From the IMG/VR virus record IMGVR_UViG_3300043409_000928, positions 1 to 64,000 of that record: DNA of 64,000 bases; one strand, 5' to 3'. Shown here one piece after another: positions 356 through 45,146 of the stretch; within the stretch, counting starts at the first letter, position 1, and every line of letters starts with the position of its first letter. Position numbers and translations under genes: made by a program. Below the pieces are notes generated by a model. That model did no database searches, had not been told where the DNA came from, and was given only the letters and a program-made list of their open reading frames with translations.

Positions 356-466
356 TTAGCCTCTGGTCAGGTCGGGCATAAAACACAATAGAACAACAAA
401 TAAAACAAAGGCCACGCAGGTGATTATTTCATTAATCTTTTGGTCACGATCAAGATCATTCCACAT
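356..466 (-). CDS. Small membrane protein (36 aa)
   Basis: AGGAG RBS; hydrophobic ITCVAFVLFVVLLCF. Confidence 0.55.
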   Translation of the reverse strand: MWNDLDRDQKINEIITCVAFVLFVVLLCFMPDLTRG

Positions 467-477
467 ATTAATTCTCC

Positions 478-561
478 TTAGATTTTAGTAAGTATCCAAC
501 ATTTGACAGCAAAAATAACTGCCACCACTACCACTGTTATAAGAATTTCTACGTCTGTCAT
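478..561 (-). CDS. Small membrane protein (27 aa)
   Basis: AAGGAG RBS; MTDVEILITVVVAVIFAVKCWILTKI. Confidence 0.55.
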   Translation of the reverse strand: MTDVEILITVVVVAVIFAVKCWILTKI

Positions 562-15974: not shown

Positions 15975-16850
15975 TTACCAATTAAACCTACTTGCTTCGT
16001 CAATATCTTCAATTTTAATCACAATAGATCTAGTGGTAATGGTATTCATATAATTTTTTAATCGTTCGCTGACCAAATCATTTCGAACCTTCTTGCTTGG
16101 ACTGCCAAGTACTATGATATCAAAGTCTTGATTTTTATAACTTACCAACATATCAATGCACCATCCAGCTGGATTGGTAAATCCTGTTTTGCCAATTTTG
16201 ATATCGTATTGGCCAGCAAATACGTTGGTGTTATAGACCACTAACTTTTGCCACATGCCCCGCCGGTTTTGTGCGTCTGCGCTGGAGGTCTTACTCATTG
16301 CAGTTTCTTTGAAAATTGCGTATTTGGTCAGGTGACGATTTAACAGGTGTAAATCCCATGCAGTACTGGTGTTTAACAGGAGTCCAGTTGGTTCAATAAA
16401 AGATGTATTCTTCATTTCCAGGCGTTGCGCCGTGGCATTCATTTCTGCAATGAATAGGTCATAACCCATTGGGTGGTGCACAGCCAGTAATTTGGCCGCA
16501 AGATTATCGCTGGAGACCAGTGCCAGGTGAAGTAGTTCTCTACGGGTAATTATCATACCTAGTTTAAGAACTCTGCTACCTTCTATTCGTTGAGGAATAA
16601 CTGGTAATTTTTCATCCAAATCGGCTCGGCTTTCCAGCACAACAAACGCAGTCATTAATTTTGTCACACTGGCAATTGGCATCACCCGGTGGATATTTAA
16701 TTCATCAGCAATTGTGTTGGTTGTTTTATTGAAAACTAATATTGCTTGAGCAGGTTCAGCAGGTGGTTTATTTGTTTTCTTTTTTGCCTGAACAGGCATT
16801 GAACACATTACAACAATAAGTGGCCCGGCCAGCAGGAATCGAACCCACAT
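15975..16850 (-). CDS. D-Ala-D-Ala endo/carboxypeptidase (peptidase S11, PBP7-like)
   Basis: ASVTK (SxxK), SDN, KTG; signal peptide. Confidence 0.9.
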   Translation of the reverse strand: MWVRFLLAGPLIVVMCSMPVQAKKKTNKPPAEPAQAILVFNKTTNTIADELNIHRVMPIASVTKLMTAFVVLESRADLDEKLPVIPQRIEGSRVLKLGMIITRRELLHLALVSSDNLAAKLLAVHHPMGYDLFIAEMNATAQRLEMKNTSFIEPTGLLLNTSTAWDLHLLNRHLTKYAIFKETAMSKTSSADAQNRRGMWQKLVVYNTNVFAGQYDIKIGKTGFTNPAGWCIDMLVSYKNQDFDIIVLGSPSKKVRNDLVSERLKNYMNTITTRSIVIKIEDIDEASRFNW

Positions 16851-16905
16851 TCTAGAGGTAGAAGCTCTATGTACTATCCATTGTACTATGGCCAGATGAT
16901 GCAAT

Positions 16906-17127
16906 TTAAACGATCTTACCAAGGACTTGATAGATAAGTTGGTCCAACTCTTGCTGATAGTCTTTGCCAAATCTACGCTTTAAATAAATTGACTCAATTA
17001 TTTCTTTAGAATCAAGATCGCATTCAGGAGGCAAGTTACCTCTGGACTCTAATTCTTCAATCAGGTCTTCGGTATCAAAATCACTTAGACTTACATCAAC
17101 TTCAACTTCTGTATAGACTGTTGGCAT
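16906..17127 (-). CDS. Hypothetical protein
   Basis: DFDTEDLIEELESRG. Confidence 0.65.
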   Translation of the reverse strand: MPTVYTEVEVDVSLSDFDTEDLIEELESRGNLPPECDLDSKEIIESIYLKRRFGKDYQQELDQLIYQVLGKIV

Positions 17128-17144
17128 GTTTGACCTTTAAATTG

Positions 17145-17228
17145 TGGTGCCCCAGGTCGGACTCGAACCGACACGCCTTTCGGCACTGGCTTCTAAGACC
17201 AGCGTGGCTACCATTACACCACCGGGGC
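17145..17228 (-). tRNA. tRNA-Leu(TAG)
   Basis: Cloverleaf, long variable arm, encoded CCA. Confidence 0.95.
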
Positions 17229-17238
17229 AAAAAAAACT

Positions 17239-17403
17239 TTACTTACGCTGTCCTTCTTTTGGCTCTCTCTTGACAATTACACCAGCGGCCAACTCTGCTT
17301 GAATCATTGCGGCCTTCCAAGCATTGCGCTTGGTTGTATCAACAATGCTACACAGCATCCGCTTGGTTGTTTTGCTTAATCGAAATGTTTTACCTGGTTT
17401 CAT
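17239..17403 (-). CDS. Small basic protein (54 aa)
   Basis: MKPGKTFRLSKTTKRML... Confidence 0.6.
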   Translation of the reverse strand: MKPGKTFRLSKTTKRMLCSIVDTTKRNAWKAAMIQAELAAGVIVKREPKEGQRK

Positions 17404-17421
17404 ACTGAGCTTTCTTTATGT

Positions 17422-17511
17422 TGGCGGAGAGACTGAGACTCGAACTCAGAAGCCGGATTACGCCGACCGACGGATTAGCAATCCGCTCCAATACCATTAT
17501 GGGACCTCTCC
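17422..17511 (-). tRNA. tRNA-Ser(GCT)
   Basis: Cloverleaf, long variable arm, G73, CCA. Confidence 0.95.
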
Positions 17512-17594
17512 AAAATCTTTTACTTTGTAAAATTTATTATAAGCTATTTAAGCCGCTATTGTCAATGTTTTTCTGTGAAATTTTTAAAATAAAT

Positions 17595-17672
17595 TGGTGC
17601 CCCTGCCCCGATTCGAACGGGGATGATTTCTCCTTTTGAGAGAGACGACTTTGCCAATTTGTCTACAGGGGC
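17595..17672 (-). tRNA. tRNA-Leu(CAA), short variable arm
   Basis: CTCAAAA anticodon loop; CCA. Confidence 0.9.
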
Positions 17673-17683
17673 TATATAGTGTT

Positions 17684-18859
17684 ATGTCTTTAAAAGAAAT
17701 AGTTGAAAAAAGAAATGCTTGTAGTATTCCTTGGATACATACCGAAGTCAACCTACAAACAAACGAAATAAAACCCTGTTGTAAGTATCGCGGGGTAAGT
17801 GGTAATTTAAATGACGGCTTAGAATCAGTTTGGAATAACCCAGGTTATCAACAGTTACGGGACGACATTGCCAACGATCGCACACATCCAGCTTGTTCTG
17901 CGTGTGCAGTGCCCGACAATGTGTTTTCTTATAAAAGCTTTAAGAATAAGAATTACATGCCGCGATTGCACCGCATAGATATTGCACAGCCAGCGTTGCC
18001 AGAAATCATTCACATTACATTAAAGAACACCTGTAACTTGGCCTGCAGAATGTGCAGTCCTTATTCCAGCAGTAGATTAAATGAAGTGGCCAATAGAAAC
18101 TCTTTTCTTAAAAGCTTTTATAATTTTAAAAGCGTTAACAATCGTTTTGATTTAAATCAATTAAAAGGATCGTTTATTAATGCTCGTCATTTGACCATCA
18201 CAGGCGGCGAGCCGCTAATGGATAATGATTGCGAACAATTGATTGAAATGGTTCAATTGGAAAGCAGTCAACTAGAAAGCATAGTGTTTTCCACCAACAT
18301 GACTTATATGAATGATGGCCTGTTGGATCGTTTAAATGCAATGCGAATAAAGGTCAAATTAAATGTCAGCATTGATGGTCCAAAACGCATACACGAATAT
18401 ATTCGTGTTGGGTGTAACTGGGACGAGCTGGCAGAAAATCTTTGTCGTTTGCGGGCTCGCTACCCATTTGAATTTGGTATTAACAGTACTATCAGTGCGC
18501 TCAACATTGGCTACATCACTGACCTAATAACTGAAGTAGAACAATTGGGTGAACAAACTGGTGTTGAGTTTGGACATATAATGGCAACTCCTGTGCTAGA
18601 ACCGCATTTACATCCGAGTATATTTGCTTGGTCTGGATTTGCTGACATTTGCTCTGAGTACAAAGATCGATTGAACAGATATTCTACCAGTAGCATAGAT
18701 GGAGCAGATACCTTGATTAAAACAGCACAGGAGTTTTTAAATAGTCCCAGTGGTGATAGTGAACTTTTTAAAACCTTTATCAGCCAATTTGATAGTGTGG
18801 CCATGACTGATGTGCGGGCTGTGTATCCTGAGCTGACTGGATTTTTACCACCACTTTAA
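17684..18859 (+). CDS. Radical SAM protein with N-terminal SPASM/twitch-like domain
   Basis: PCC...CSAC; CNLACRMC; TGGEP; SIDG. Confidence 0.88.
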   Translation: MSLKEIVEKRNACSIPWIHTEVNLQTNEIKPCCKYRGVSGNLNDGLESVWNNPGYQQLRDDIANDRTHPACSACAVPDNVFSYKSFKNKNYMPRLHRIDIAQPALPEIIHITLKNTCNLACRMCSPYSSSRLNEVANRNSFLKSFYNFKSVNNRFDLNQLKGSFINARHLTITGGEPLMDNDCEQLIEMVQLESSQLESIVFSTNMTYMNDGLLDRLNAMRIKVKLNVSIDGPKRIHEYIRVGCNWDELAENLCRLRARYPFEFGINSTISALNIGYITDLITEVEQLGEQTGVEFGHIMATPVLEPHLHPSIFAWSGFADICSEYKDRLNRYSTSSIDGADTLIKTAQEFLNSPSGDSELFKTFISQFDSVAMTDVRAVYPELTGFLPPL

Positions 18860-18866
18860 ATCACAA

Positions 18867-18941
18867 TGGTCCCACCAACAGGAATCGAACCTGTATCTAA
18901 GGTTTAGGAAACCCCTATTCTATCCATTGAACTATAGTGAG
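18867..18941 (-). tRNA. tRNA-Arg(CCT)
   Basis: TTCCTAA loop; CCA. Confidence 0.93.
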
Positions 18942-18944
18942 AAT

Positions 18945-19018
18945 TGGCGGGCCCTGAGAGACTCGAACTCCCACTAACGGTTTTGGAGACCGCAGTACTG
19001 CCATTATACTAAGAACCC
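18945..19018 (-). tRNA. tRNA-Trp(CCA)
   Basis: CTCCAAA loop; CCA. Confidence 0.93.
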
Positions 19019-19162
19019 TTAAAACTCTTTCTTGAATATAGGAATCATTATTGCCGGTATCTTTGTGCAACCTTGTTCGTTGGGTACACTACAAGTCTTT
19101 GGCATTGCACCGCAAGCGGCAACAGTTACAAGTACGCACAGGGACAATAATTTTTTCATCAT
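19019..19162 (-). CDS. Small lipoprotein (47 aa)
   Basis: MMKKLLSLCVLVTVAAC lipobox. Confidence 0.55.
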   Translation of the reverse strand: MMKKLLSLCVLVTVAACGAMPKTCSVPNEQGCTKIPAIMIPIFKKEF

Positions 19163-19166
19163 ATTC

Positions 19167-19243
19167 TGGTAGCCTCACTCTGACTCGAACAGAGGACCTA
19201 TGCGTTATCAACACATTGCTCTAACCAACTGAGCTATGAGGCT
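19167..19243 (-). tRNA. tRNA-Ile(GAT)
   Basis: TTGATAA loop; CCA. Confidence 0.95.
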
Positions 19244-19263
19244 ATAAACTTACTTATAAATTT

Positions 19264-19337
19264 TGGCACGGGAACTAGGACTCGAACCTAGAACGACACA
19301 GTCAAAGTGTGTTGTGTTACCATTACACCATTCCCGA
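19264..19337 (-). tRNA. tRNA-Gln(TTG)
   Basis: CTTTGAC loop; CCA. Confidence 0.93.
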
Positions 19338-19345
19338 ACAGAAAC

Positions 19346-19421
19346 TGGTACCAAGAGTTGGACTCGAACCAACCACACCCTGTGCTTCAAACAGGTGCTC
19401 TACCAGATGAGCTATCTTGGC
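19346..19421 (-). tRNA. tRNA-Phe(GAA)
   Basis: TTGAAGC loop; CCA. Confidence 0.93.
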
Positions 19422-19433
19422 ATAAACTTATTA

Positions 19434-19506
19434 GGGGTGACCTACGGGGGTTGAACCCGTACTAACAGAATCACAATCTGTGGTGCTACCGCTACACTAA
19501 GGTCAC
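19434..19506 (-). tRNA. tRNA-His(GTG), no encoded G-1 or complete CCA
   Basis: TTGTGAT loop; C73; -1 base is T; 3' end reads CCT. Confidence 0.9.
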
Positions 19507-19530
19507 ACCTAATAAGTCTAATATATTCAA

Positions 19531-19606
19531 ACTCATTGCGGGCAAGATTTCGAAACCTGCATTAAGCCCCAACGGGCCTTTCTTAGCCATTAGAAGACCG
19601 CGAGTT
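19531..19606 (-). ncRNA. Degenerate tRNA-like element
   Basis: D-arm TTCT-AATGGCTA-AGAA, hairpin, T-arm with TTCGAAA; no 7-nt anticodon loop, no CCA. Confidence 0.45.
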
Positions 19607-19655
19607 CCTGAGGGTAATTACTCCCCAGCATGGATGTTATCTGCAGATAACATTT

Positions 19656-19788
19656 ACCATAGAAAAACACACTTGGCTCCCCTTACAACCTTGTTCCTGT
19701 CAATTCAGGATGAAACTGGATGCACCCAGTGGCTCCCCTTGGTTGTTTGTATCTGTCAATTCAGATTGAAAGTGTGTTTATCTATGGT
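19656..19788 (-). ncRNA. Stem-closed ncRNA candidate with internal duplication
   Basis: ACCATAGATAAACACACT...AGTGTGTTTTTCTATGGT terminal stem. Confidence 0.55.
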
Positions 19789-19858
19789 AGGGGTGCTCGG
19801 GAACGATCCGAGTTTTACTGGTTAAAAGCCAGTTACTTCACCTTAAAGTTTCACCCCC
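19785..19858 (-). tRNA. tRNA-Lys(TTT), atypical
   Basis: CTTTTAA loop; A8 instead of U8; T-loop ATCGTTC. Confidence 0.85.
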
Positions 19859-20078
19859 ATTAATTTCTCTCTTTTGCGCTTGTCGTTCTGATTTCCAGAA
19901 CACACGCTTCCAATCCTTCAAGTGTTTCCACCATTGCGGACTGCGTGTCAGAATACCCTGTTGCTTATGCGCCATAAAGAGACCCCCTATACTGATTGCA
20001 AAGATCAGTCCACGCTAGTATTTCTTTTTCATTACTCTTCATTGAATCATTCCAAGACATAATTGTCTCCTTTAAATT

Positions 20079-20153
20079 TGGTGGTAATGGTAAGAATCGA
20101 ACTTACACTTGACTGCGTATGAAGCAGGCGCACTACCGTTATGCTACATTACC
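20079..20153 (-). tRNA. tRNA-Met(CAT), elongator-type
   Basis: TTCATAC loop; G1-C72. Confidence 0.88.
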
Positions 20154-20154
20154 T

Positions 20155-20232
20155 TGGAGTACAGAGTCGGATTTGAACCGACGGCTTTACTGGTTTGCAA
20201 TCAGTTCCCTTGGGCCTCTCGGGCATCTGTAC
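20155..20232 (-). tRNA. tRNA-Cys(GCA)
   Basis: TTGCAAA loop; U73. Confidence 0.93.
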
Positions 20233-20240
20233 ATGTTGAA

Positions 20241-20460
20241 TTTGTTAAAGTAGTGCTACCACATTATAAGCACCATTCACCCGAATTAACAAGCTCGAGC
20301 GGGATTCGGTAAGTTACTTGGGATACCGGGCCAGCGTATAGACCTTTCTACCTCGGACACTACGTGCCCGGGTGGGGATCGAACCCATTTGCCTTCTACT
20401 GTTTTGGTCCTTCGAAGAAACCTAGACAGCGTGACTTTCTCTTGCTAACACTTTAACAAA
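20241..20460 (-). ncRNA. YrlA/Y-RNA-like ncRNA with permuted tRNA-like module
   Basis: Long terminal stem; T-arm > closed acceptor-like stem > D-arm order. Confidence 0.5.
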
Positions 20461-20463
20461 ACT

Positions 20464-20538
20464 TGGCGCCCTGTGATGGAATCGAACCACCATCCTGAGT
20501 TTCGAAGACTCTAATTCTATCCGTTGAACTAACAGGGC
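20464..20538 (-). tRNA. tRNA-Arg(TCG)
   Basis: CTTCGAA loop; CCA. Confidence 0.93.
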
Positions 20539-20544
20539 ATAAAC

Positions 20545-20619
20545 TGGTGGGCCAGTCTGGAATTGAACCAGAACTCAACCGATTATGAGTCGGACGCTTT
20601 ACCATTAAGCTACTGGCCC
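20545..20619 (-). tRNA. tRNA-Ile2(CAT), probable lysidine type
   Basis: CTCATAA loop; GGGCC acceptor stem resembles Ile2. Confidence 0.85.
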
Positions 20620-20623
20620 AATT

Positions 20624-20697
20624 TGGCGTACCTCCAGGGACTCGAACCCCGACGAACAGTTTTGGAGACTGTCATGCTGCCATTACATTAGAGATAC
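20624..20697 (-). tRNA. tRNA-Trp(CCA), second copy
   Basis: CTCCAAA loop; CCA. Confidence 0.92.
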
Positions 20698-20704
20698 ATA
20701 AAAA

Positions 20705-21067
20705 TTAATAATTGTCCCAGAACATCGTGTTGTTGCATTGATAATCAAAGTCGTTTTTTAACTCTTCTATATCCATGCTGTCAACTCTGTACTGGTGTTG
20801 AACCCCTGCCCATATACTAATGCGAACATAGTCTGCTGGCGCACTGGTTGGACGTGGTGTGGATGTTTTGTGTTGTATAAAACCTGTGCTGTTACCTGAC
20901 TTAAAAGAATACCCACCAGGAGTATCCCAATTCTCTAACAATGCTTGCATTTCAGCCTGAGTCATTGTGTAAGTGTGTGCATAGTTGTCAGCTACTCGAA
21001 TAGTTAGATCAACTGTGCCTTTGTCTTTGAACAGGTAAATTTTAAAAGTTTTATCAAACGCTAGCAT
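20705..21067 (-). CDS. Hypothetical protein
   Basis: AAGGA RBS; between tRNAs. Confidence 0.65.
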   Translation of the reverse strand: MLAFDKTFKIYLFKDKGTVDLTIRVADNYAHTYTMTQAEMQALLENWDTPGGYSFKSGNSTGFIQHKTSTPRPTSAPADYVRISIWAGVQHQYRVDSMDIEELKNDFDYQCNNTMFWDNY

Positions 21068-21076
21068 ATTATCCTT

Positions 21077-21168
21077 TGGCGGAAGCGGTGAGATTCGAAC
21101 TCACGGGAGGTTTAACCCTCCGCTAGTTTTCAAGACTAGTGCCATAAACCGGACTCGGCCACACTTCC
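21077..21168 (-). tRNA. tRNA-Ser(TGA)
   Basis: CTTGAAA loop; long variable arm. Confidence 0.95.
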
Positions 21169-21173
21169 TAAAT

Positions 21174-21258
21174 TGGTGGAGTATCCTGGGATCGAACCAG
21201 GCGTGCCCGAAGGCGGCGGATTTACAGTCCACTGCATCACCATTGATGCTTCTACTCC
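21174..21258 (-). tRNA. tRNA-Tyr(GTA)
   Basis: CTGTAAA loop; long variable arm. Confidence 0.93.
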
Positions 21259-21266
21259 ATGTAGAA

Positions 21267-21295
21267 ATTTTAACACACTAACACGCAAATGTCAA
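21267..21295 (-). promoter_or_regulatory. Internal sigma70 promoter upstream of tRNA-Tyr
   Basis: TTGACA-17-TAAAAT. Confidence 0.6.
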
Positions 21296-21300
21296 TGTGT

Positions 21301-21368
21301 GTATTAAAGCATACTCGGCTCGTGGCCTTGTCCCCTAAACATTCTAGTTTTGGAATATGCTTTAATAC
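21301..21368 (-). ncRNA. Stem-closed ncRNA candidate
   Basis: GTATTAAAGCATATT...AGTATGCTTTAATAC. Confidence 0.5.
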
Positions 21369-21465
21369 GATCTAATTTTTCCTCCCACAAAAGGGATTCC
21401 ATCCTAGTCGCCGCCCATTTGCCCATGTTTTAAGTGCGGGCTAGGATCTCGTTTCCTACTACACT

Positions 21466-21503
21466 AAAAGAAAAACCCCTGGAGCCTTTCGAGTCCAGGG
21501 GTT
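21466..21503 (-). terminator. Attenuator terminator ahead of tRNA cluster 1
   Basis: AACCCCTGGA-CTCGAAAGGC-TCCAGGGGTT followed by TTTCTTTT. Confidence 0.85.
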
Positions 21504-21523
21504 AAGTAAACGGTCTGATTACT

Positions 21524-21640
21524 TTATCCTGGACATGCTCCTAGAATATGACGATATGACATAAACTTAGAAACGCTGAAGCTTAGGCTCTGTTGTGAGC
21601 ACCAACTTTGTTTCGATATGGATATGGTTTTGTTCATCAT
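21524..21640 (-). CDS. Leader (attenuator) peptide 1, 38 aa
   Basis: MMNKTISISKQSWCSQQSLSFSVSKFMSYRHILGACPG; ATG 7 nt after TATAAT (leaderless); 3' end pairs with terminator arm. Confidence 0.75.
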   Translation of the reverse strand: MMNKTISISKQSWCSQQSLSFSVSKFMSYRHILGACPG

Positions 21641-21647
21641 AGTAATC

Positions 21648-21676
21648 ATTATACACTTACTTAGCCTTTCTGTCAA
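21648..21676 (-). promoter_or_regulatory. sigma70 promoter of tRNA cluster 1 leader
   Basis: TTGACA-17-TATAAT; nested TAAGTA. Confidence 0.85.
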
Positions 21677-29668: not shown

Positions 29669-29744
29669 TGGCTGGCAAACCTGGGCTCGAACCAGGGACA
29701 TTTCGGTTAACAGCCGAACGCTCTACCAACTGAGCTATATGCCA
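29669..29744 (-). tRNA. tRNA-Asn(GTT)
   Basis: CTGTTAA loop; G73. Confidence 0.95.
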
Positions 29745-29760
29745 ATAATAAATTTAATTC

Positions 29761-29890
29761 ACTTTATAGGTGCTCTCTGTGACGCTTGAATTCACGGTAG
29801 CCCTGCTCTTCCTGGCACCTCTTGACCTGCTCGAGACTAGTCAAGTGCAGTGTTGTTCCAGTGTAGCTACTCAGAAAGCACGTATAAAGT
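29761..29890 (-). ncRNA. Stem-closed ncRNA candidate
   Basis: ACTTTATACGTGCTTTCTG...CAGAGAGCACCTATAAAGT. Confidence 0.5.
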
Positions 29891-30088
29891 GTCCGGCTAC
29901 TCACACCACATGAGCCCCGGACTGAGCGGTTACTCTGTCCATAACATTTTTCTTATGGGATGGCGTTATACCACACCCCAGGCAGTTTCCAGTATCCCAT
30001 ATAGTGGGACTGTGAGGTCAGGTCCTAGTGTACCCCCTGTTCTCTCGTTTCAGGGACGCTGTTTTATAACGCAAAACAGTAAACCGGG
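29890..30088 (-). ncRNA. Structured ncRNA candidate, copy A
   Basis: Shares ordered motifs with 32545-32745. Confidence 0.6.
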
Positions 30089-30322
30089 TTATTTAATTTT
30101 ACGCATATAGTTTTTTACATTTATTTCGCCTGAATTAAATTCAAGCAATGCAGTTACCGGTGCGTTAAATTGTTCTGTCTTTCCATCATTCCTATGCTGG
30201 CTTGCTAGTTCTCTTGCTCGAGCAGATGCCATAAGAATCAGATTAAACTTGTTTCCGCCTGCATTTTCAATGCATACCTCCACATCAATTTCTGTGCCGC
30301 GACTTAGTGATTTAGAATGCAT
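30089..30322 (-). CDS. rpoZ: RNA polymerase omega subunit homolog
   Basis: NKFNLILMASARAREL...PVTALLEF..GEI. Confidence 0.8.
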   Translation of the reverse strand: MHSKSLSRGTEIDVEVCIENAGGNKFNLILMASARARELASQHRNDGKTEQFNAPVTALLEFNSGEINVKNYMRKIK

Positions 30323-30348
30323 TGTTTGCCTTTGTTGTTAACTACTCA

Positions 30349-30422
30349 TGGAGCGGGATAAGAGAATCGAACTCTTGACCGAAGATTGGAAATCTGCTGT
30401 TTTACCATTAAACTAATCCCGC
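30349..30422 (-). tRNA. tRNA-Gly(TCC)
   Basis: TTTCCAA loop; U73. Confidence 0.95.
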
Positions 30423-30955
30423 CAATGCACACCACCTACCTGTGTCAAACGTAATGCTATGCTGACTCTGGTATCAGTTACGCCTGATACGTTATGTAGA
30501 ATATTCGAGTGAAGCATCACCCATTTTCTTAACGGCACTATAGTCGAATAACATTTTTCGAGGTCGTCAAACACAGTTGTATTTGCTATGCTAGCTTTTC
30601 TAATTAAAGGAAATCCCTTTTCTATGAACCAATTTGTCTGAACATCTATGCCCCCTTGATCCAGGATATAAAAAATAGTAGTTTCACCTGCCGCGTCTGT
30701 GTGAGGAGCTTTAGTTCCGTATGGGGGGAGAATTTCTTGAATAGAACTGTCACTTAACTGGTAACCATCCAGTTGAGGCACAATATTTGCTGTTATCCAA
30801 TCTTTCATTTTTGTTGACTGCCTGTATTTCATAAAACACTGTTGTCTAGCATAGTATTGAGAAGACAGTGAAATACAGGAATATGCGTCTTGTTCTAGAT
30901 CATATGGTAAGGGTGGATAATCTAATTCTTTATAAAAATCTTCAGGACTAAACAT
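30413..30955 (-). CDS. 2OG-Fe(II)-like DSBH protein
   Basis: PHTD ... ILHNV ... R; stop codon lies inside tRNA-Gly. Confidence 0.6.
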   Translation of the reverse strand: MFSPEDFYKELDYPPLPYDLEQDAYSCISLSSQYYARQQCFMKYRQSTKMKDWITANIVPQLDGYQLSDSSIQEILPPYGTKAPHTDAAGETTIFYILDQGGIDVQTNWFIEKGFPLIRKASIANTTVFDDLEKCYSTIVPLRKWVMLHSNILHNVSGVTDTRVSIALRLTQVGGVHWRD

Positions 30956-30977
30956 TACTTTTTCTCCGTTTTAAACT

Positions 30978-31054
30978 TGGTCGGAGTACTAGGATTCGAA
31001 CCTAGGACCTCATCGTCCCAAACGATGCGAACTACCGGGCTGTTCTACACTCCG
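30978..31054 (-). tRNA. tRNA-Pro(TGG)
   Basis: TTTGGGA loop. Confidence 0.95.
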
Positions 31055-31061
31055 ACATAAC

Positions 31062-31136
31062 TGGTTGCAGGGGATGGATTCGAACCACCGATCTTCAGCT
31101 TATGAGACTGACGAGTTGCCACTTCTCTACCCCGCG
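31062..31136 (-). tRNA. tRNA-Met(CAT), initiator-like
   Basis: C1:A72 mismatch; CTCATAA. Confidence 0.9.
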
Positions 31137-31155
31137 ATAACTTACTAACTTTAAC

Positions 31156-31231
31156 TGGTGCCGCTTGTCGGATTCGAACTGACCACCTGCCGCTTACAAG
31201 GCGGCTGCTCTACCAAATGAGCTAAAGCGGC
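31156..31231 (-). tRNA. tRNA-Thr(TGT)
   Basis: CTTGTAA loop. Confidence 0.95.
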
Positions 31232-31260
31232 GAAACTTTTATAACCTTACTTATGTGTGC

Positions 31261-31335
31261 TGGTGCGCGGTGAGAGTTTCGAACTCCCGACCCTCTCGGT
31301 GTAAACGAGACGCTCTACCACTGAGCTAACCGCGC
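31261..31335 (-). tRNA. tRNA-Val(TAC)
   Basis: TTTACAC loop. Confidence 0.95.
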
Positions 31336-31345
31336 CGTTGATTTA

Positions 31346-31786
31346 TTAATCACCTAGATATTCGTAATTGGTTGACTCAGTGTTTTCTCTAAAAACAATA
31401 GCACCATTTTTTGTATGAAACCTTTTGGCCATCTCTGTTTTAGGACTCAGTGTAACAAATCTTTTAATATGTGTCTTGTGCTGTTGTATATGCTTCACTG
31501 CATCAAATATCAACTGTTTACCAGCGCCTGGCTTGTAACTCCAGATTGTATAAAATACTGCTGTGTCTGGTTCCTCTGAACTTTCAAACAATTGATCTTC
31601 GCTGGTGGGAATTCCAATTTGGTAACTCACACAAGTAATGGCTCGTGCTATATCATTTTCATCTCTTAAAACAAAAATGTCTTTGTTATCGCCCATGCGC
31701 TCTACAGTAGGAATATGCGGGCGTACTGGATCGTCCTTGAGATATTCTGCAAGTTTTTCACTTAGATTTTGAAGAAGGTATAACAT
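31346..31786 (-). CDS. Conserved phage protein, GNAT-like fold
   Basis: DDPVRP, AVFYTIWS..GAG, FVTLSP. Confidence 0.7.
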   Translation of the reverse strand: MLYLLQNLSEKLAEYLKDDPVRPHIPTVERMGDNKDIFVLRDENDIARAITCVSYQIGIPTSEDQLFESSEEPDTAVFYTIWSYKPGAGKQLIFDAVKHIQQHKTHIKRFVTLSPKTEMAKRFHTKNGAIVFRENTESTNYEYLGD

Positions 31787-31961
31787 CAGAGTTACTTAGT
31801 CGTTTATAATTGTTATTGCTATCATCTTTGATAACTGCTTCGGCTTGGTTCTCACCTTCAGCCTTTTTCTTTTTTCCAAACGCCAATTCCCAATTGCTTG
31901 TAAATGTATCTTCATCTACACTCTTTGGTCTTGGCGCGGATCCTTTGCCAGCTTCTTGCAT
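31758..31961 (-). CDS. Small conserved phage protein
   Basis: GKGSAPRP...NWELAFG. Confidence 0.6.
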   Translation of the reverse strand: MQEAGKGSAPRPKSVDEDTFTSNWELAFGKKKKAEGENQAEAVIKDDSNNNYKRLSNSDVIPSSKSK

Positions 31962-31982
31962 ACTAACTTTCCTTTAAAATAG

Positions 31983-32058
31983 TGGTGGAGGTGACAAGGA
32001 TCGAACTTGCGACATCCAGCTTGCAAAGCTGGCGCTCTCCCAACTGAGCTACACCCCC
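31983..32058 (-). tRNA. tRNA-Ala(TGC)
   Basis: G3-U70; TTTGCAA. Confidence 0.95.
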
Positions 32059-32076
32059 AAAAATTTTATGATTTGC

Positions 32077-32164
32077 ACCATAGAAAAACACACTCAAGTC
32101 CGCGGCACGGAAGGCACTATACCCGCGATGGCTTTTGACCAGGCCTAGTGTGTTTATCTATAGT
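32077..32164 (-). ncRNA. Stem-closed ncRNA candidate
   Basis: ACTATAGATAAACACACT...AGTGTGTTTTTCTATGGT, near-identical stem to 19656-19788. Confidence 0.55.
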
Positions 32165-32165
32165 T

Positions 32166-32273
32166 AGCATATTGAAACACACTATACAACAGGTTTAGGT
32201 CTGCTTCTGTATCCTGCTACGGCCGAGTATGAAGTTATCTCTGGACCTATGCCGTAATGTGTTTTAATATGCT
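32166..32273 (-). ncRNA. Stem-closed ncRNA candidate
   Basis: AGCATATTAAAACACATT...AGTGTGTTTCAATATGCT. Confidence 0.55.
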
Positions 32274-32460
32274 CTGCGAACCCCGGTGGTAATTGTAGTG
32301 CATCCTCTCCCGGGTTACCCCAGTACGACCTCACCTTCCACCCACTTCCCGGCAGGTTCCGTTAACGCATTGCCAGCGGCCTTTTGGTTCGAAGACTACC
32401 ACCCGTGGTTGTCACACCACTTCTCATCCTGCGGGTCACAGTATCCGACGACACTCGGAA
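32272..32460 (-). ncRNA. GC-rich structured ncRNA candidate
   Basis: CTGTGACCC/GGGTTCGCAG and GGTGGTAGT/ATTACCACC long-range stems. Confidence 0.5.
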
Positions 32461-32464
32461 CGTC

Positions 32465-32540
32465 TGGTTGCGGGGCTTGGATTTGAACCAAGGATGGCAA
32501 TGGCTTATGAGACCACGCTGGTGACCAGGCCCTCCCCGCG
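32465..32540 (-). tRNA. tRNA-Met(CAT), initiator-like, aberrant D arm
   Basis: C1:A72; CTCATAA; CCA. Confidence 0.8.
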
Positions 32541-32544
32541 ATTA

Positions 32545-32745
32545 GGATTAAGCTACTGGTTTCCACACCAGCCCTTAAATTGAGCAGTTACTCTGTCCAT
32601 CTCATTTATTCAAAGTCTGTGTGCAGTTGAGATTCTGCCTATCAGAGTCTGCGAGGGTAGTTTCCAGCCTCACGCTTACGGTTTTCTGCCACCGGATCTC
32701 TATCGCTAATCAAACGCTATTTTAACGAAAATAGTAACGGGATAG
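32545..32745 (-). ncRNA. Structured ncRNA candidate, copy B
   Basis: Shares ordered motifs with 29890-30088. Confidence 0.6.
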
Positions 32746-32870
32746 ATGGGCTCAGTTACAAACTGATTTAATGCTCCCTGCTCGGCGTTTTGACTTGCAT
32801 CCTTTTCAGGCTGACCTTCAAGGTCCATTTAATGCGTCCTGCTTTGCGTTCTGGAACCACCCTAAACTCT

Positions 32871-32899
32871 ATTATAGCACCAATCAACGTGAGTGTCAA
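32871..32899 (-). promoter_or_regulatory. sigma70 promoter (internal)
   Basis: TTGACA-17-TATAAT. Confidence 0.8.
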
Positions 32900-32913
32900 T
32901 TGGTGCCAAATCT

Positions 32914-32988
32914 TGGCGACTCGTGGGAGAATCGAACTCCCGTAAGCGGATAGACAATCCGCAGTAATAACCTCTATACGAACGAGCC
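32914..32988 (-). tRNA. tRNA-Asp(GTC)
   Basis: TTGTCTA loop; G73. Confidence 0.92.
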
Positions 32989-32995
32989 TAATTTC

Positions 32996-33080
32996 TGGTG
33001 CGACTGGCCGGAATCGAACCGGCACGCCCTTCAGCGAGAGATTTTAAGTCTCTTGTGTCTACCGATTTCACCACAGTCGC
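32996..33080 (-). tRNA. tRNA-Leu(TAA)
   Basis: CTTAAAA loop; long variable arm. Confidence 0.95.
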
Positions 33081-33083
33081 AAT

Positions 33084-33300
33084 ACCATATGTAAAATTAC
33101 AAAGGAACTCCACTTACCTTGCAGGACCGTCTCCTGCTACTTCTGCTTCGTCATTACGCTCTAGTAAATCCTACCGTGCCATTTGGTGATGTTGCCATCC
33201 CTCAGCTTTCATATACACTACATTGAGCCAGCCCGTCAGCTGGTTATACTCAATACAGGTACCTAGCAGTACTAGTAACCTTTATAACTTTACATATGGT
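33084..33300 (-). ncRNA. Stem-closed ncRNA candidate (~215 nt)
   Basis: ACCATATGTAAAGTTATAAAGG...CCTTTGTAATTTTACATATGGT. Confidence 0.55.
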
Positions 33301-33371
33301 ACTCGATAGGAGAATCGAACTCCTCTTTCCGGCGTGAAAGGCCAGCGTCCTAACCGATAGACGAATCGAGC
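33297..33371 (-). tRNA. tRNA-Glu(TTC)
   Basis: CTTTCAC loop. Confidence 0.95.
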
Positions 33372-33386
33372 ACAAATGCCACCAAA

Positions 33387-33399
33387 TTTTTAAAGAACA
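33387..33399 (-). promoter_or_regulatory. boxA-like antitermination element
   Basis: TGTTCTTTAAAAA vs rrn boxA TGCTCTTTAACA. Confidence 0.6.
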
Positions 33400-33430
33400 A
33401 TCACTTCAACTTTCGCTGTAGTGTTTGGTT

Positions 33431-33566
33431 ATTATATACGGACAATGCCGTAATGTCAACCGTTTTCTAACTTTCTTTTGTTGTATTTCTACAACAACTT
33501 TCAAACTGTTTCTACTGTATTGCTACAGTATGCCACTAGTATATGCTATCTACTGATTCCTGTCAA
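33431..33566 (-). promoter_or_regulatory. Tandem sigma70 promoters, each with an upstream palindrome
   Basis: TTGACA-17-TATAAT (33431-33459); TTGACA-17-TATACT (33538-33566); TGTTGTATTTCTACAACA at 33479 and 33586. Confidence 0.8.
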
Positions 33567-33607
33567 CAACTATCTGCCTTTATTTTGTTGTATTTCTACA
33601 ACAAACT

Positions 33608-33681
33608 TGGAGCGGGATAGGAGAATCGAACTCCTGACTAAACCTTGGCAAGGTTTCGTTTGACCATTAAACTAATCCCGC
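33608..33681 (-). tRNA. tRNA-Gly(GCC)
   Basis: TTGCCAA loop; U73. Confidence 0.95.
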
Positions 33682-33697
33682 ATAACCTTTCCACAAT

Positions 33698-33728
33698 AAA
33701 AAAACCCTGGAGTTTTTATTTCCAGGGC
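33698..33728 (-). terminator. Attenuator terminator ahead of tRNA cluster 2
   Basis: CCCTGGA-AATAAAAAC-TCCAGGG-TTTTTTT. Confidence 0.85.
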
Positions 33729-33751
33729 CTGTAATCTCACTATGCGTAGAG

Positions 33752-33817
33752 TTACGGCCTCGGAGTATCCTCTGTGGCTGGTCCTGTATTACCTGGTAAC
33801 AATTTTGCATTTAACAT
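33752..33817 (-). CDS. Leader (attenuator) peptide 2, 21 aa
   Basis: MLNAKLLPGNTGPATEDTPRP; ATG 6 nt after TATAAT (leaderless); 3' end pairs with terminator arm. Confidence 0.75.
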   Translation of the reverse strand: MLNAKLLPGNTGPATEDTPRP

Positions 33818-33823
33818 AGTACC

Positions 33824-33852
33824 ATTATATATCCTTTTAAACAAGAAGTCAA
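33824..33852 (-). promoter_or_regulatory. sigma70 promoter of tRNA cluster 2 leader
   Basis: TTGACT-17-TATAAT. Confidence 0.85.
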
Positions 33853-43029: not shown

Positions 43030-43375
43030 AAGAAACCCGCCGAAGCGGGTTCTGAGTTTCTGTTACGAGGTATGTCTTACCCTAAGTGGCTGTTAGGCCG
43101 CTAATGCGAACTGTGAGTCGTTTGCTTTTACTTTATTTCTTCTTTTTACATCGTTGCTGATGTGCTGTCCACTTGTTTACTTGTTGCCCTGTCGAAACCA
43201 TGACTGGCCCATCAAAAAAGGACTATAAAGAATACTACTATCAGTACGATAGATAGAACTCCACATACGAGTTGATACAGATATTCACTATCCATACAAT
43301 CCCCTTTTGGTGGACCAGGCGGGAGTCGAACCCGCGTCCAGAACACTTTTCTCTTTGCTTCATACAGCAATAACT
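43030..43375 (-). ncRNA. ssrA: Circularly permuted two-piece tmRNA
   Basis: T-arm/CCA piece (ends 43308) precedes GGGCCAG piece (starts 43210); G3-U70; tag ANDSQFALAA at 43093-43125; promoter TTGACC-17-TATACT at 43379-43407; terminator at 43030-43051. Confidence 0.92.
43212..43295 (-). CDS. 27-aa hydrophobic peptide inside tmRNA intervening segment
   Basis: MDSEYLYQLVCGVLSIVLIVVFFIVLF; AAGGGG RBS. Confidence 0.5.
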   Translation of the reverse strand: MDSEYLYQLVCGVLSIVLIVVFFIVLF

Positions 43376-43403
43376 TACAGTATATACTTATTTGATCAGC
43401 AGG

Positions 43404-45146
43404 TCAAATCAATTTAAATAGGCCAAACGCACTGCCATTTTCGTTGCTGTATGCCAGATAGTTGACATTAGAATTTCCTGGAATAGAACTTGAACCAAAC
43501 CAGTATGATGCTCGTTCTTGTTCTGTAACAACTGCCCATGTACCGTCACCATCAATTACTTCGCCATCGCTGTCTCTATTCAGTACCCACTTTTGTGTAA
43601 TTGTAGATTCTGAGTTATACCACCATACTGATTCTGTTGGTACTAGTGGCTCAACAGTTCCTGAATAAATTCTATTCTCTGCGGCAAAGTATATGTTGGT
43701 TCCAAACTCATTTGTAATTCTTCTTTGGTAGCCTTCGTCTCCTGGAATACCGTTTGCATCTTCTAATAATTCTGCTGTTTCGAGTCTGCTCAATCCTTGA
43801 TTGAATTTTACTACCTTGCCATCTCCTCCAATCATTGGTTTCAAATCTGTTCCTACTTTACAAATATAAAATTCTGGAGCAACTGATGCTGGGACTAAAT
43901 TATTGGTTGTATCAAACGAAAATCCATTTAGTTCAGCACTTGGAATTGACAGTATATGATTGTATCCTCTATGCAATGTAATTTCAGGATTCCTGTTTAG
44001 GTAAACATCTTTACGACCATTGACCACTTGTTCACTTTGTACTCCTGTCACAGCCCAACAGTTTCTATCTGCAATCCATACAAAGTTAAAATTTGTCACT
44101 GGAGGATCAATGATTGCTTCGGCTGTGGCATCACCACCATCTTGTTCGTTACCAGAAATTGTGTTTGCGTTATATCCTATGAACTTTCCGCAATAGTCGT
44201 ACAATGGTTCTAGTTGAGCAAAGAATGGATCTTGTGGAGTCAGTGCCGCAATGGCCAAGGCATAAACATCTGGGCCAACAATGCTTGGCCAAATATTATT
44301 ATTTCTTATACCGTTAATATCTGCAGGATAGTTTGCTGTTTTTCCTAGGTTAGATACGATCGACTGTGCTTGTGCTGTTGCATCTTTTAAGTTGGGACTA
44401 TCAATAGGCGGGTATGGAGGATTCCATTTAACAGCGGGCGCAGATGCTATTGTTACTGGCTGTACGTCGGTGGTCTTATACGGCTTGCCAGTTTTTAAAT
44501 TTGTTTTGTGTCTAAAGTCAGGAAACAACTGTCTGTTGATTGATTTGTCAAGTGCTTTCTTAACTCCTTGTAATCTTTTAGTTAACTGGTCAATTTTTTG
44601 ACCTGGAATATTGGCCATCTTCCCGCCGTGCTTTTGAATACTACCAAGTATACTGCTTGGATTGTAAGAACCTGTATTAAGGCCGCCGTCGCCGTTTAAG
44701 CACAATTGTGGTTTTGTCAATCGACCAATGTCATTTAAGATTGCATTCATTTCAGCAAACTCGGCATCAATGATCTGGCTCAACACATCAGGGATTTTTG
44801 GCGCCTTGAGAGGAATTTTACATAGCCCATCTAACGCCAATAAACTTTGCACTTCTGCAATTGCACTGTTTACTCTGCCTAGTATTTCTTTTGCGCCAGA
44901 TAGATCTTCTAGTGCCTTTAACTGATCTTTGATGCCGCGCAGTTCATTTTGTAAATCTTTGATCGTAGGCAAGTCAGTATTTTCAGAAATTAATGCATCA
45001 AGGTCAAGCTTTATACATAACAAAGGACCTTTGAGCATGTTACTAAGACCACCAAACAGTATGGCACATATGATGTCCTTGATTGGTTTGTTCAAGATGC
45101 CTTTGGTCGCAACCTTAACGCCTGGGATAATTGGGATGTCTGCCAT
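43404..45146 (-). CDS. Putative virion structural (baseplate/tail-region) protein
   Basis: Late promoter TAAGTA; context. Confidence 0.6.
   Translation of the reverse strand: MADIPIIPGVKVATKGILNKPIKDIICAILFGGLSNMLKGPLLCIKLDLDALISENTDLPTIKDLQNELRGIKDQLKALEDLSGAKEILGRVNSAIAEVQSLLALDGLCKIPLKAPKIPDVLSQIIDAEFAEMNAILNDIGRLTKPQLCLNGDGGLNTGSYNPSSILGSIQKHGGKMANIPGQKIDQLTKRLQGVKKALDKSINRQLFPDFRHKTNLKTGKPYKTTDVQPVTIASAPAVKWNPPYPPIDSPNLKDATAQAQSIVSNLGKTANYPADINGIRNNNIWPSIVGPDVYALAIAALTPQDPFFAQLEPLYDYCGKFIGYNANTISGNEQDGGDATAEAIIDPPVTNFNFVWIADRNCWAVTGVQSEQVVNGRKDVYLNRNPEITLHRGYNHILSIPSAELNGFSFDTTNNLVPASVAPEFYICKVGTDLKPMIGGDGKVVKFNQGLSRLETAELLEDANGIPGDEGYQRRITNEFGTNIYFAAENRIYSGTVEPLVPTESVWWYNSESTITQKWVLNRDSDGEVIDGDGTWAVVTEQERASYWFGSSSIPGNSNVNYLAYSNENGSAFGLFKLI

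Follow-up and report, generated by a model that had tools for sequence, protein, structure and literature searches.

A predicted leader-peptide attenuator ahead of a tRNA gene cluster in an uncultured freshwater jumbo phage

Classical leader-peptide attenuators of amino-acid operons (trpL, hisL, leuL, thrL, pheL, ilvL) have a short ORF at the start of the transcript and an intrinsic terminator before the regulated genes. An antiterminator shares a strand with the terminator, and the stop codon is placed so that a finishing ribosome prevents antitermination. The codons of the leader name what the operon supplies. Leaderless sensory short ORFs are known in mycobacteria, in which a ribosome stalled on a polycysteine short ORF remodels downstream RNA structure to switch on operon genes (10.1101/834739). 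Why phages carry tRNA genes, and how these genes are controlled, is an open question. Recent work ties phage tRNAs to escape from tRNA-cleaving defences, which gives a biological reason for a phage to supply tRNAs when host tRNAs are lost (PMC11555353; PMC12409363). Here we examined a short unit at the head of a phage tRNA cluster for which an earlier note had proposed an attenuator. The note had further proposed common ancestry with a second such unit nearby, followed by retuning of the leader codons to the local tRNA set.

The window, i.e. the whole stretch of DNA analysed, comprises the first 64 kb of a 285,304-bp IMG/VR virus record (IMGVR_UViG_3300043409_000928), an uncultured freshwater jumbo phage. 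All 30 tRNA/tmRNA genes of that genome lie in the window on the minus strand. The features of the unit, of its sister unit ('attenuator 1') and of the two tRNA clusters are collected in Table 1. The hairpin and the antiterminator were present as the earlier note had described them. The note had not mentioned the promoter, the ATG that lies only 6 nt after the -10 so that the mRNA is leaderless, or the tRNA-Gly(GCC) that begins shortly after the U-run with no promoter in between.

Table 1. Coordinates of the attenuator unit and neighbouring features in the window.
Feature	Position	Strand	Detail
Sigma-70-type promoter	33824..33852	-	TTGACT-17 nt-TATAAT, 11 of 12 matches; -35 at 33852..33847, -10 at 33829..33824
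Leader ORF	33752..33817	-	21 codons plus TAA (33754..33752); MLNAKLLPGNTGPATEDTPRP
Conserved core codons	33767..33799	-	LPGNTGPATED; proposed sensing part
Possible segment 1 (tentative)	33770..33777	-	CCACAGAG; could pair with the start of the antiterminator 5' arm as an anti-antiterminator
Antiterminator 5' arm (segment 2)	33749..33764	-	TCCGAGGCCGTAACTC; covers the last three codons and the TAA stop
Antiterminator 3' arm (segment 3)	33721..33738	-	GAGATTACAGGCCCTGGA; contains the terminator's 5' arm CCCTGGA (33727..33721)
Intrinsic terminator	33698..33727	-	Hairpin CCCTGGA-AATAAAAAC-TCCAGGG at 33727..33705; 7-bp stem (extendable to 9-10 bp), 9-nt loop; U7 at 33704..33698
tRNA-Gly(GCC)	33608..33681	-	First regulated gene in the proposed model; 16 nt after the U-run
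tRNA cluster B	29669..33681	-	Gly-GCC, Glu, Leu-TAA, Asp, Met, Ala, Val, Thr, Met, Pro, Gly-TCC, Asn; internal promoters at 33566, 33459 and 32899
Sister unit (attenuator 1)	21470..21676	-	Promoter 21676..21648; leaderless 38-codon ORF 21640..21524, ATG 7 nt after the -10; antiterminator GTCCAGG..AAGTAA/TTACTT..CCTGGAC; terminator 21503..21477; about 200 nt upstream of cluster A
tRNA cluster A	16821..21258	-	Tyr, Ser, Trp, Met, Arg, Cys, Met, Lys, His, Phe, Gln, Ile, Trp, Arg, Leu, Ser, Leu, Arg; a promoter at 21295 lies behind attenuator 1
Permuted tmRNA	43031..43421	-	

The antiterminator forms 14 standard pairs and includes the TAA stop. Alone it scored -16.2 kcal/mol compared with -11.7 kcal/mol for the terminator hairpin, and its core is part of the MFE of the nascent transcript. 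On this single sequence, however, the pairing was not beyond chance (shuffle p=0.08; z=-2.3 for the whole leader). Taken alone, these weak tests would leave room for a chance arrangement of a terminator for the upstream operon, an unrelated promoter and a random short ORF. A 21-codon ORF is about the mean length of a random ORF, and an ATG at the start site can arise from the CAT start-site motif of this phage. The significance comes from relatives.

Using a peptide-level DNA pattern and a terminator-plus-tRNA pattern the unit was found in 15 other contigs, which together with the window gave eight sequence versions. Every version had a consensus promoter with the ATG 5-6 nt after the -10, an ORF of 21-22 codons, a stop codon directly after the 5' arm, the terminator, tRNA-Gly(GCC) 5-16 nt later and the same tRNA set downstream. 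In the core the only replacements seen were Thr to Leu and Gly to Ala, which stay within the amino-acid set of the cluster. The 5' arm differed between versions (GAGGCCG, AGGGTCG, AGGGCCG), yet each pairs with GGCCCTGG; the orthologue arms TCTAGGGTCG and CTAGGGCCG keep the pairing. In the diverged clade the helix reaches 10-11 pairs and dominates the nascent fold. A variant of the terminator 3' arm, TCCGGGGC, also still pairs with the 5' arm. The orthologue of the upstream 221-aa gene was not syntenic downstream. Further, 105 contigs share the tRNA-Gly sequence of the window, yet none has the leader; that tRNA is a mobile allele. GenBank phages had no DNA match to the unit or to a family member, so no cultured carrier was found. 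A neighbouring 689-aa protein found only distant Bacillus phage proteases.

The unit belongs to a larger family. We identified 99 distinct small ORFs of 18-62 codons that end 13-45 nt before a CCC...GGG terminator. Of these, 75, with ORFs of 21-55 codons, are followed by at least three tRNA genes on the same strand. Among loci chosen only by the hairpin sequence, 28 of 39 small-ORF units had tRNAs within 2 kb, whereas none of 43 terminators after large genes did (p=2.5e-13). In 68% of units an in-frame ATG was located 4-12 nt after the -10 of a promoter scoring at least 10 of 12, and this phage has other apparently leaderless genes of 54-485 codons. In the 75 units the stop codon lies 22-38 nt before the terminator, i.e. 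just beyond a ribosome footprint; in the unit studied here it lies inside the 5' arm, 27 nt before the terminator. The earlier note had pointed out the CCCTGGA/TCCAGGG stem shared by both terminators. It occurs only once more in the window and in the whole 285-kb genome (21500..21477; 0.00 occurrences expected by chance). Nevertheless, it is weak evidence of ancestry by itself because the same stem ends ordinary genes in more than 120 unrelated phage contigs. The better evidence of relatedness is the family architecture and a covariance model of the family, for which the attenuator-2 terminator was the best hit in the window (36.7 bits, E=1.4e-7). Because MAFFT did not align the antiterminator 5' arm across the family, the model recognizes only the terminator part of attenuator 2 and barely finds attenuator 1 (E=0.11). 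Common ancestry is plausible.

Next we asked whether the alternative fold is a property of the family. Pairing of the terminator's 5' arm with the 75 nt upstream gained 10.3 kcal/mol on average in the family compared with 1.3 kcal/mol in 56 control terminators of the same stem type after ordinary genes (Mann-Whitney p=3e-22). Of the family units, 88% beat 95% of their own dinucleotide shuffles, against 5% of controls. For attenuator 2 the ddG was -6.2 kcal/mol and for attenuator 1 -9.0 kcal/mol. When sequences were anchored only on the last GGG before the stop and on the CCC of the terminator, the adjoining triplets covaried (TCC/GGA 23, TCT/AGA 6, TTC/GAA 6, TTT/AAA 6; permutation p<2e-4). 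In a simple equilibrium model with a masked ribosome footprint, median P(terminator) was 0.34 for the free RNA and 0.98 with a ribosome at the stop, while controls stayed at 0.99 in every state. In this window's own version the antiterminator is weaker than in relatives: P(terminator) was 0.94 for the free RNA, fell only to 0.54 with the A site at codons 13-14 and was 0.98 at the end. Possibly it relies in the classical way on a weak 1:2 helix, CCACAGAG / CTCCGAGG, that appears in the MFE. In the orthologue sequences L343/L347 an ACA to TTA change adds two pairs to this helix, yet most family members lack an obvious one. Family members are related to each other, so the statistics overcount independent events. 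The comparative data nonetheless contradict a chance arrangement, which we consider very unlikely.

The earlier note had suggested that the leader codons were retuned to the local tRNA set. Of 20 leader-2 codons 16 are decodable by cluster B tRNAs (background 0.45; p=0.0015; rank 2 of 1709 random small ORFs) and only 3 by cluster A. Leader 1 has 25 of 37 codons decodable by cluster A (binomial p=9e-4, but only rank 171 of 1709 among random small ORFs) and 7 by cluster B. The 2x2 table of cluster-specific residues yielded Fisher p=9e-6. The first ~5 and last ~5-7 codons fall outside the amino-acid rule. Leaving aside the first five and last seven codons, leader 2 uses only residues of its own cluster, and ten amino acids (CFHIKQRSWY) are absent from both peptide and cluster. 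Leader 1 contains all twelve amino acids of cluster A plus one extra (Val), and seven are absent from both. In 24 units with complete clusters, agreement between peptide set and tRNA set was 0.83-0.87 compared with 0.67-0.70 for permuted pairings, and none of 3000 permutations reached it. Independent split-cluster clades showed exact matches in what is missing from both (ADEG, DEY, DE). Where the cluster is undivided, the leader tends to hold every amino acid: 39% of leaders (mean 42 residues) contain all 20, against 1.9% of equally long windows of the phage's own proteins. Trp is present in 95% of leaders (49% expected), in 67 of 75 exactly once, Cys in 83% (33% expected) and His in 95% (59% expected). 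The match holds at the amino-acid level; synonymous codon choice was not tuned to the anticodons present (z=1.3).

Two rival views were considered in the light of these data. First, the unit may sense overall translation activity, such as ribosome availability, initiation, host shut-off or translation inhibitors, with a real fold switch but no sensing role for the peptide composition. In most family members the antiterminator is the default state and only a ribosome that reaches the end restores termination; any slowing of translation would therefore give read-through. The absence of synonymous-codon tuning also fits. However, the amino-acid set of each leader follows the tRNA set behind it, including in genomes with a split cluster, and the rare residues Trp, Cys and His are kept, mostly once each. 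A pure activity sensor would not need this, and we regard this view as unlikely. Second, the ORF may be an ordinary small-protein gene whose peptide acts in trans, the pairing with the terminator arm being incidental. The ORFs are conserved with some, albeit weak, purifying selection (pN/pS 0.49; Ser codons switch between TCN and AGY), and promoter and terminator delimit a unit of about 120 nt. Yet no Pfam or PHROG family matched the peptides, and their sequences diverge freely while composition, stop position and antiterminator are kept. The units are tightly linked to tRNA clusters, the amino-acid sets match, RNA runs through the terminator (see below) and control terminators after real genes show no such pairing. 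This explanation, too, is improbable.

Three lake or freshwater metatranscriptomes contained contigs of a close relative. These begin at window positions 33808, 33803 and 33770 and run through the terminator, tRNA-Gly and tRNA-Glu; the two that reach furthest end inside tRNA-Leu. Depth was 32-70 just inside the leader, about 3 in the bin that holds the promoter, and 0 over the upstream protein genes in three of the four runs. So the promoter is active, the transcript starts at about the ATG and read-through into the tRNAs occurs in nature, although the fraction that terminates cannot be read from contigs. The internal promoters of cluster B and the one behind attenuator 1 mean that most tRNAs do not depend on read-through; only tRNA-Gly(GCC) has no promoter of its own.

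Taken together, the data support the interpretation of the earlier note, and we consider it likely, in the absence of experimental evidence for translation or regulation, that the unit is a ribosome-mediated transcription attenuator which gives demand-driven tRNA transcription. In this model 70S ribosomes initiate on the 5' AUG. A ribosome that translates the leader quickly to its stop would cover the 5' strand of the antiterminator, the terminator would fold and transcription would end. A ribosome that lags or stalls in the central codons would leave that strand free, and the polymerase would read on into the tRNA genes. A spacing of 25-35 nt between stop and terminator fits because it lets a terminating ribosome cover the antiterminator without covering the terminator. 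The phage would therefore raise tRNA synthesis when the matching aminoacyl-tRNAs run short, for example after host tRNA loss or cleavage, and lower it once supply recovers, i.e. a negative feedback loop. The second unit would do the same for the other cluster with the complementary amino-acid set. Alternatively, antitermination may be carried out by a protein or small RNA that binds the A-rich terminator loop or the long hairpin, and the ORF may not be what is read. The loop AyTAAAAAC is conserved across the family, which is unusual for a terminator loop. Against this, open frames starting at the transcript start and ending at a fixed distance from the terminator are kept in 75 divergent units, peptide composition tracks the tRNA set and no candidate binding factor was identified. 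As the sole mechanism it is very unlikely, but it cannot be excluded as an additional layer.

More broadly, it appears more probable than not that freshwater phages, many of them jumbo phages, carry a widespread and previously undescribed device, a leaderless 'test peptide' whose residues list the amino acids served by the tRNA genes behind it. The peptide would hold all 20 amino acids when the cluster is complete, with one complementary peptide per half when it is split. Thereby the phage would measure the decoding capacity of the cell amino acid by amino acid and transcribe its tRNA genes on demand. Such a leader would be the first regulatory sensor described for viral tRNA genes; searches of an incomplete body of literature found no description of leader-peptide control of phage tRNA clusters. 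It would also extend leader-peptide attenuation from single-amino-acid sensing of biosynthetic operons to multi-amino-acid sensing of the decoding apparatus itself. The all-20 leaders could serve as compact natural sensors of translation capacity, and a further gain is an annotation rule for a recurrent, so far unannotated element in metagenomic phage genomes.

How does the unit compare with the systems introduced at the outset? The abstracts of the studies on tRNA-cleaving defences concern which tRNAs rescue infection and do not mention a sensing leader or attenuator ahead of the tRNA genes (PMC11555353; PMC12409363). Rfam searches at gathering and at permissive thresholds gave only tRNAs and the tmRNA. 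No T-box, other leader or sRNA family was found, and the best leader hits had E>3. The mycobacterial short ORFs share with this unit a leaderless mRNA and, in our model, the remodelling of downstream RNA by a stalled ribosome; however, they act on translation by unmasking a ribosome-binding site, sense cysteine only and control cysteine metabolism (10.1101/834739). With the trp, his, leu, thr and phe leaders the unit shares the short ORF at the start of the transcript, the terminator before the regulated genes, the antiterminator that shares a strand with it, the placement of the stop codon and leader residues cognate to what the operon supplies. It differs from them in that it is phage-encoded, that the downstream genes are tRNAs instead of enzymes and that the mRNA is leaderless. 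Instead of runs of a single codon the leader samples many amino acids, each occurring once to three times, and in most family members read-through, not termination, is the default fold.

The residues just after the start codon (Lys, Arg, Ile, Phe, Asn, Thr; A-rich codons) fell outside the tRNA-set rule in both leader types. This may reflect requirements of leaderless initiation. In the whole phage genome, many consensus promoters had an ATG 5-9 nt after the -10 that opens ORFs of 54-485 codons with no Shine-Dalgarno alternative. Therefore, leaderless genes seem to be common in this phage. Notably, 48 of the 57 strong promoters lie on the minus strand.

Some relatives carry two leader units in series, each followed by its own tRNA sub-cluster (contig L068, with two units in tandem, and contig L092). 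The first unit is followed by Glu, Asp, Tyr, Ile, Met. The second is followed by the rest, and its leader lacks Asp, Glu and Tyr before its tail. The 9-nt terminator loop AyTAAAAAC is conserved across most of the family. Such conservation is unusual for a terminator loop and is unexplained; possibilities are a binding site or a tuning of folding speed.

Behind nearly identical leaders, the tRNA-Gly(GCC) gene in the window (GCGGGATTAGTTTAATGG...) is a different sequence from that in the relatives L335-L339, L342 and L344 (GCGGGTGTAGCTCAGTTGG...). In addition, the window has 11 extra spacer bases. This looks like the replacement of a tRNA gene by another allele that is widespread in phages. Between tRNA-Gly and tRNA-Glu a module consisting of the hairpin TTGTTGTAGAAATACAACAA plus a consensus promoter occurs twice. 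The first of these promoters has no gene before the next hairpin.

Coordinates of the additional features (window positions unless another sequence is named)
Feature	Position	Strand
Permuted tmRNA	43031..43421	-
tRNA-Tyr(GTA)-like gene	21177..21258	-
Structured spacer behind the attenuator-1 terminator	21296..21466	-
Structured spacer, relative L002	about 560..390	-
Structured spacer, L184/L203		
Hairpin-promoter module, two occurrences	33606..33431	-
First promoter of the module	33566..33538	-
tRNA-Gly(GCC) region compared with relatives	33608..33697	-
Terminator loop	33720..33712	-
First five codons of the leaders (example)	33814..33803	-
Examples of promoters with a close ATG, whole genome	279064, 273277, 238032, 237028, 174270, 70424	-

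A tRNA-Tyr(GTA)-like gene was found by Rfam only (33.6 bits) and was missed by ARAGORN. Its sequence heads tRNA clusters in more than 119 IMG/VR contigs. Between the attenuator-1 terminator and the tRNA-Tyr promoter lies a conserved structured spacer which is also present in the contigs L002 and L184/L203. Its MFE is -48.9 kcal/mol (z=-3.3), with a 16-bp hairpin that shows compensatory changes in L002. An Rfam match was absent. Possibly the spacer is an unknown small RNA or a processing element. The phage encodes a permuted (two-piece type) tmRNA with the tag peptide ANDSQFALAA (Rfam beta_tmRNA, 132 bits; tmRNA_permuted, 120 bits). The relative L002 also carries one next to its tRNAs.
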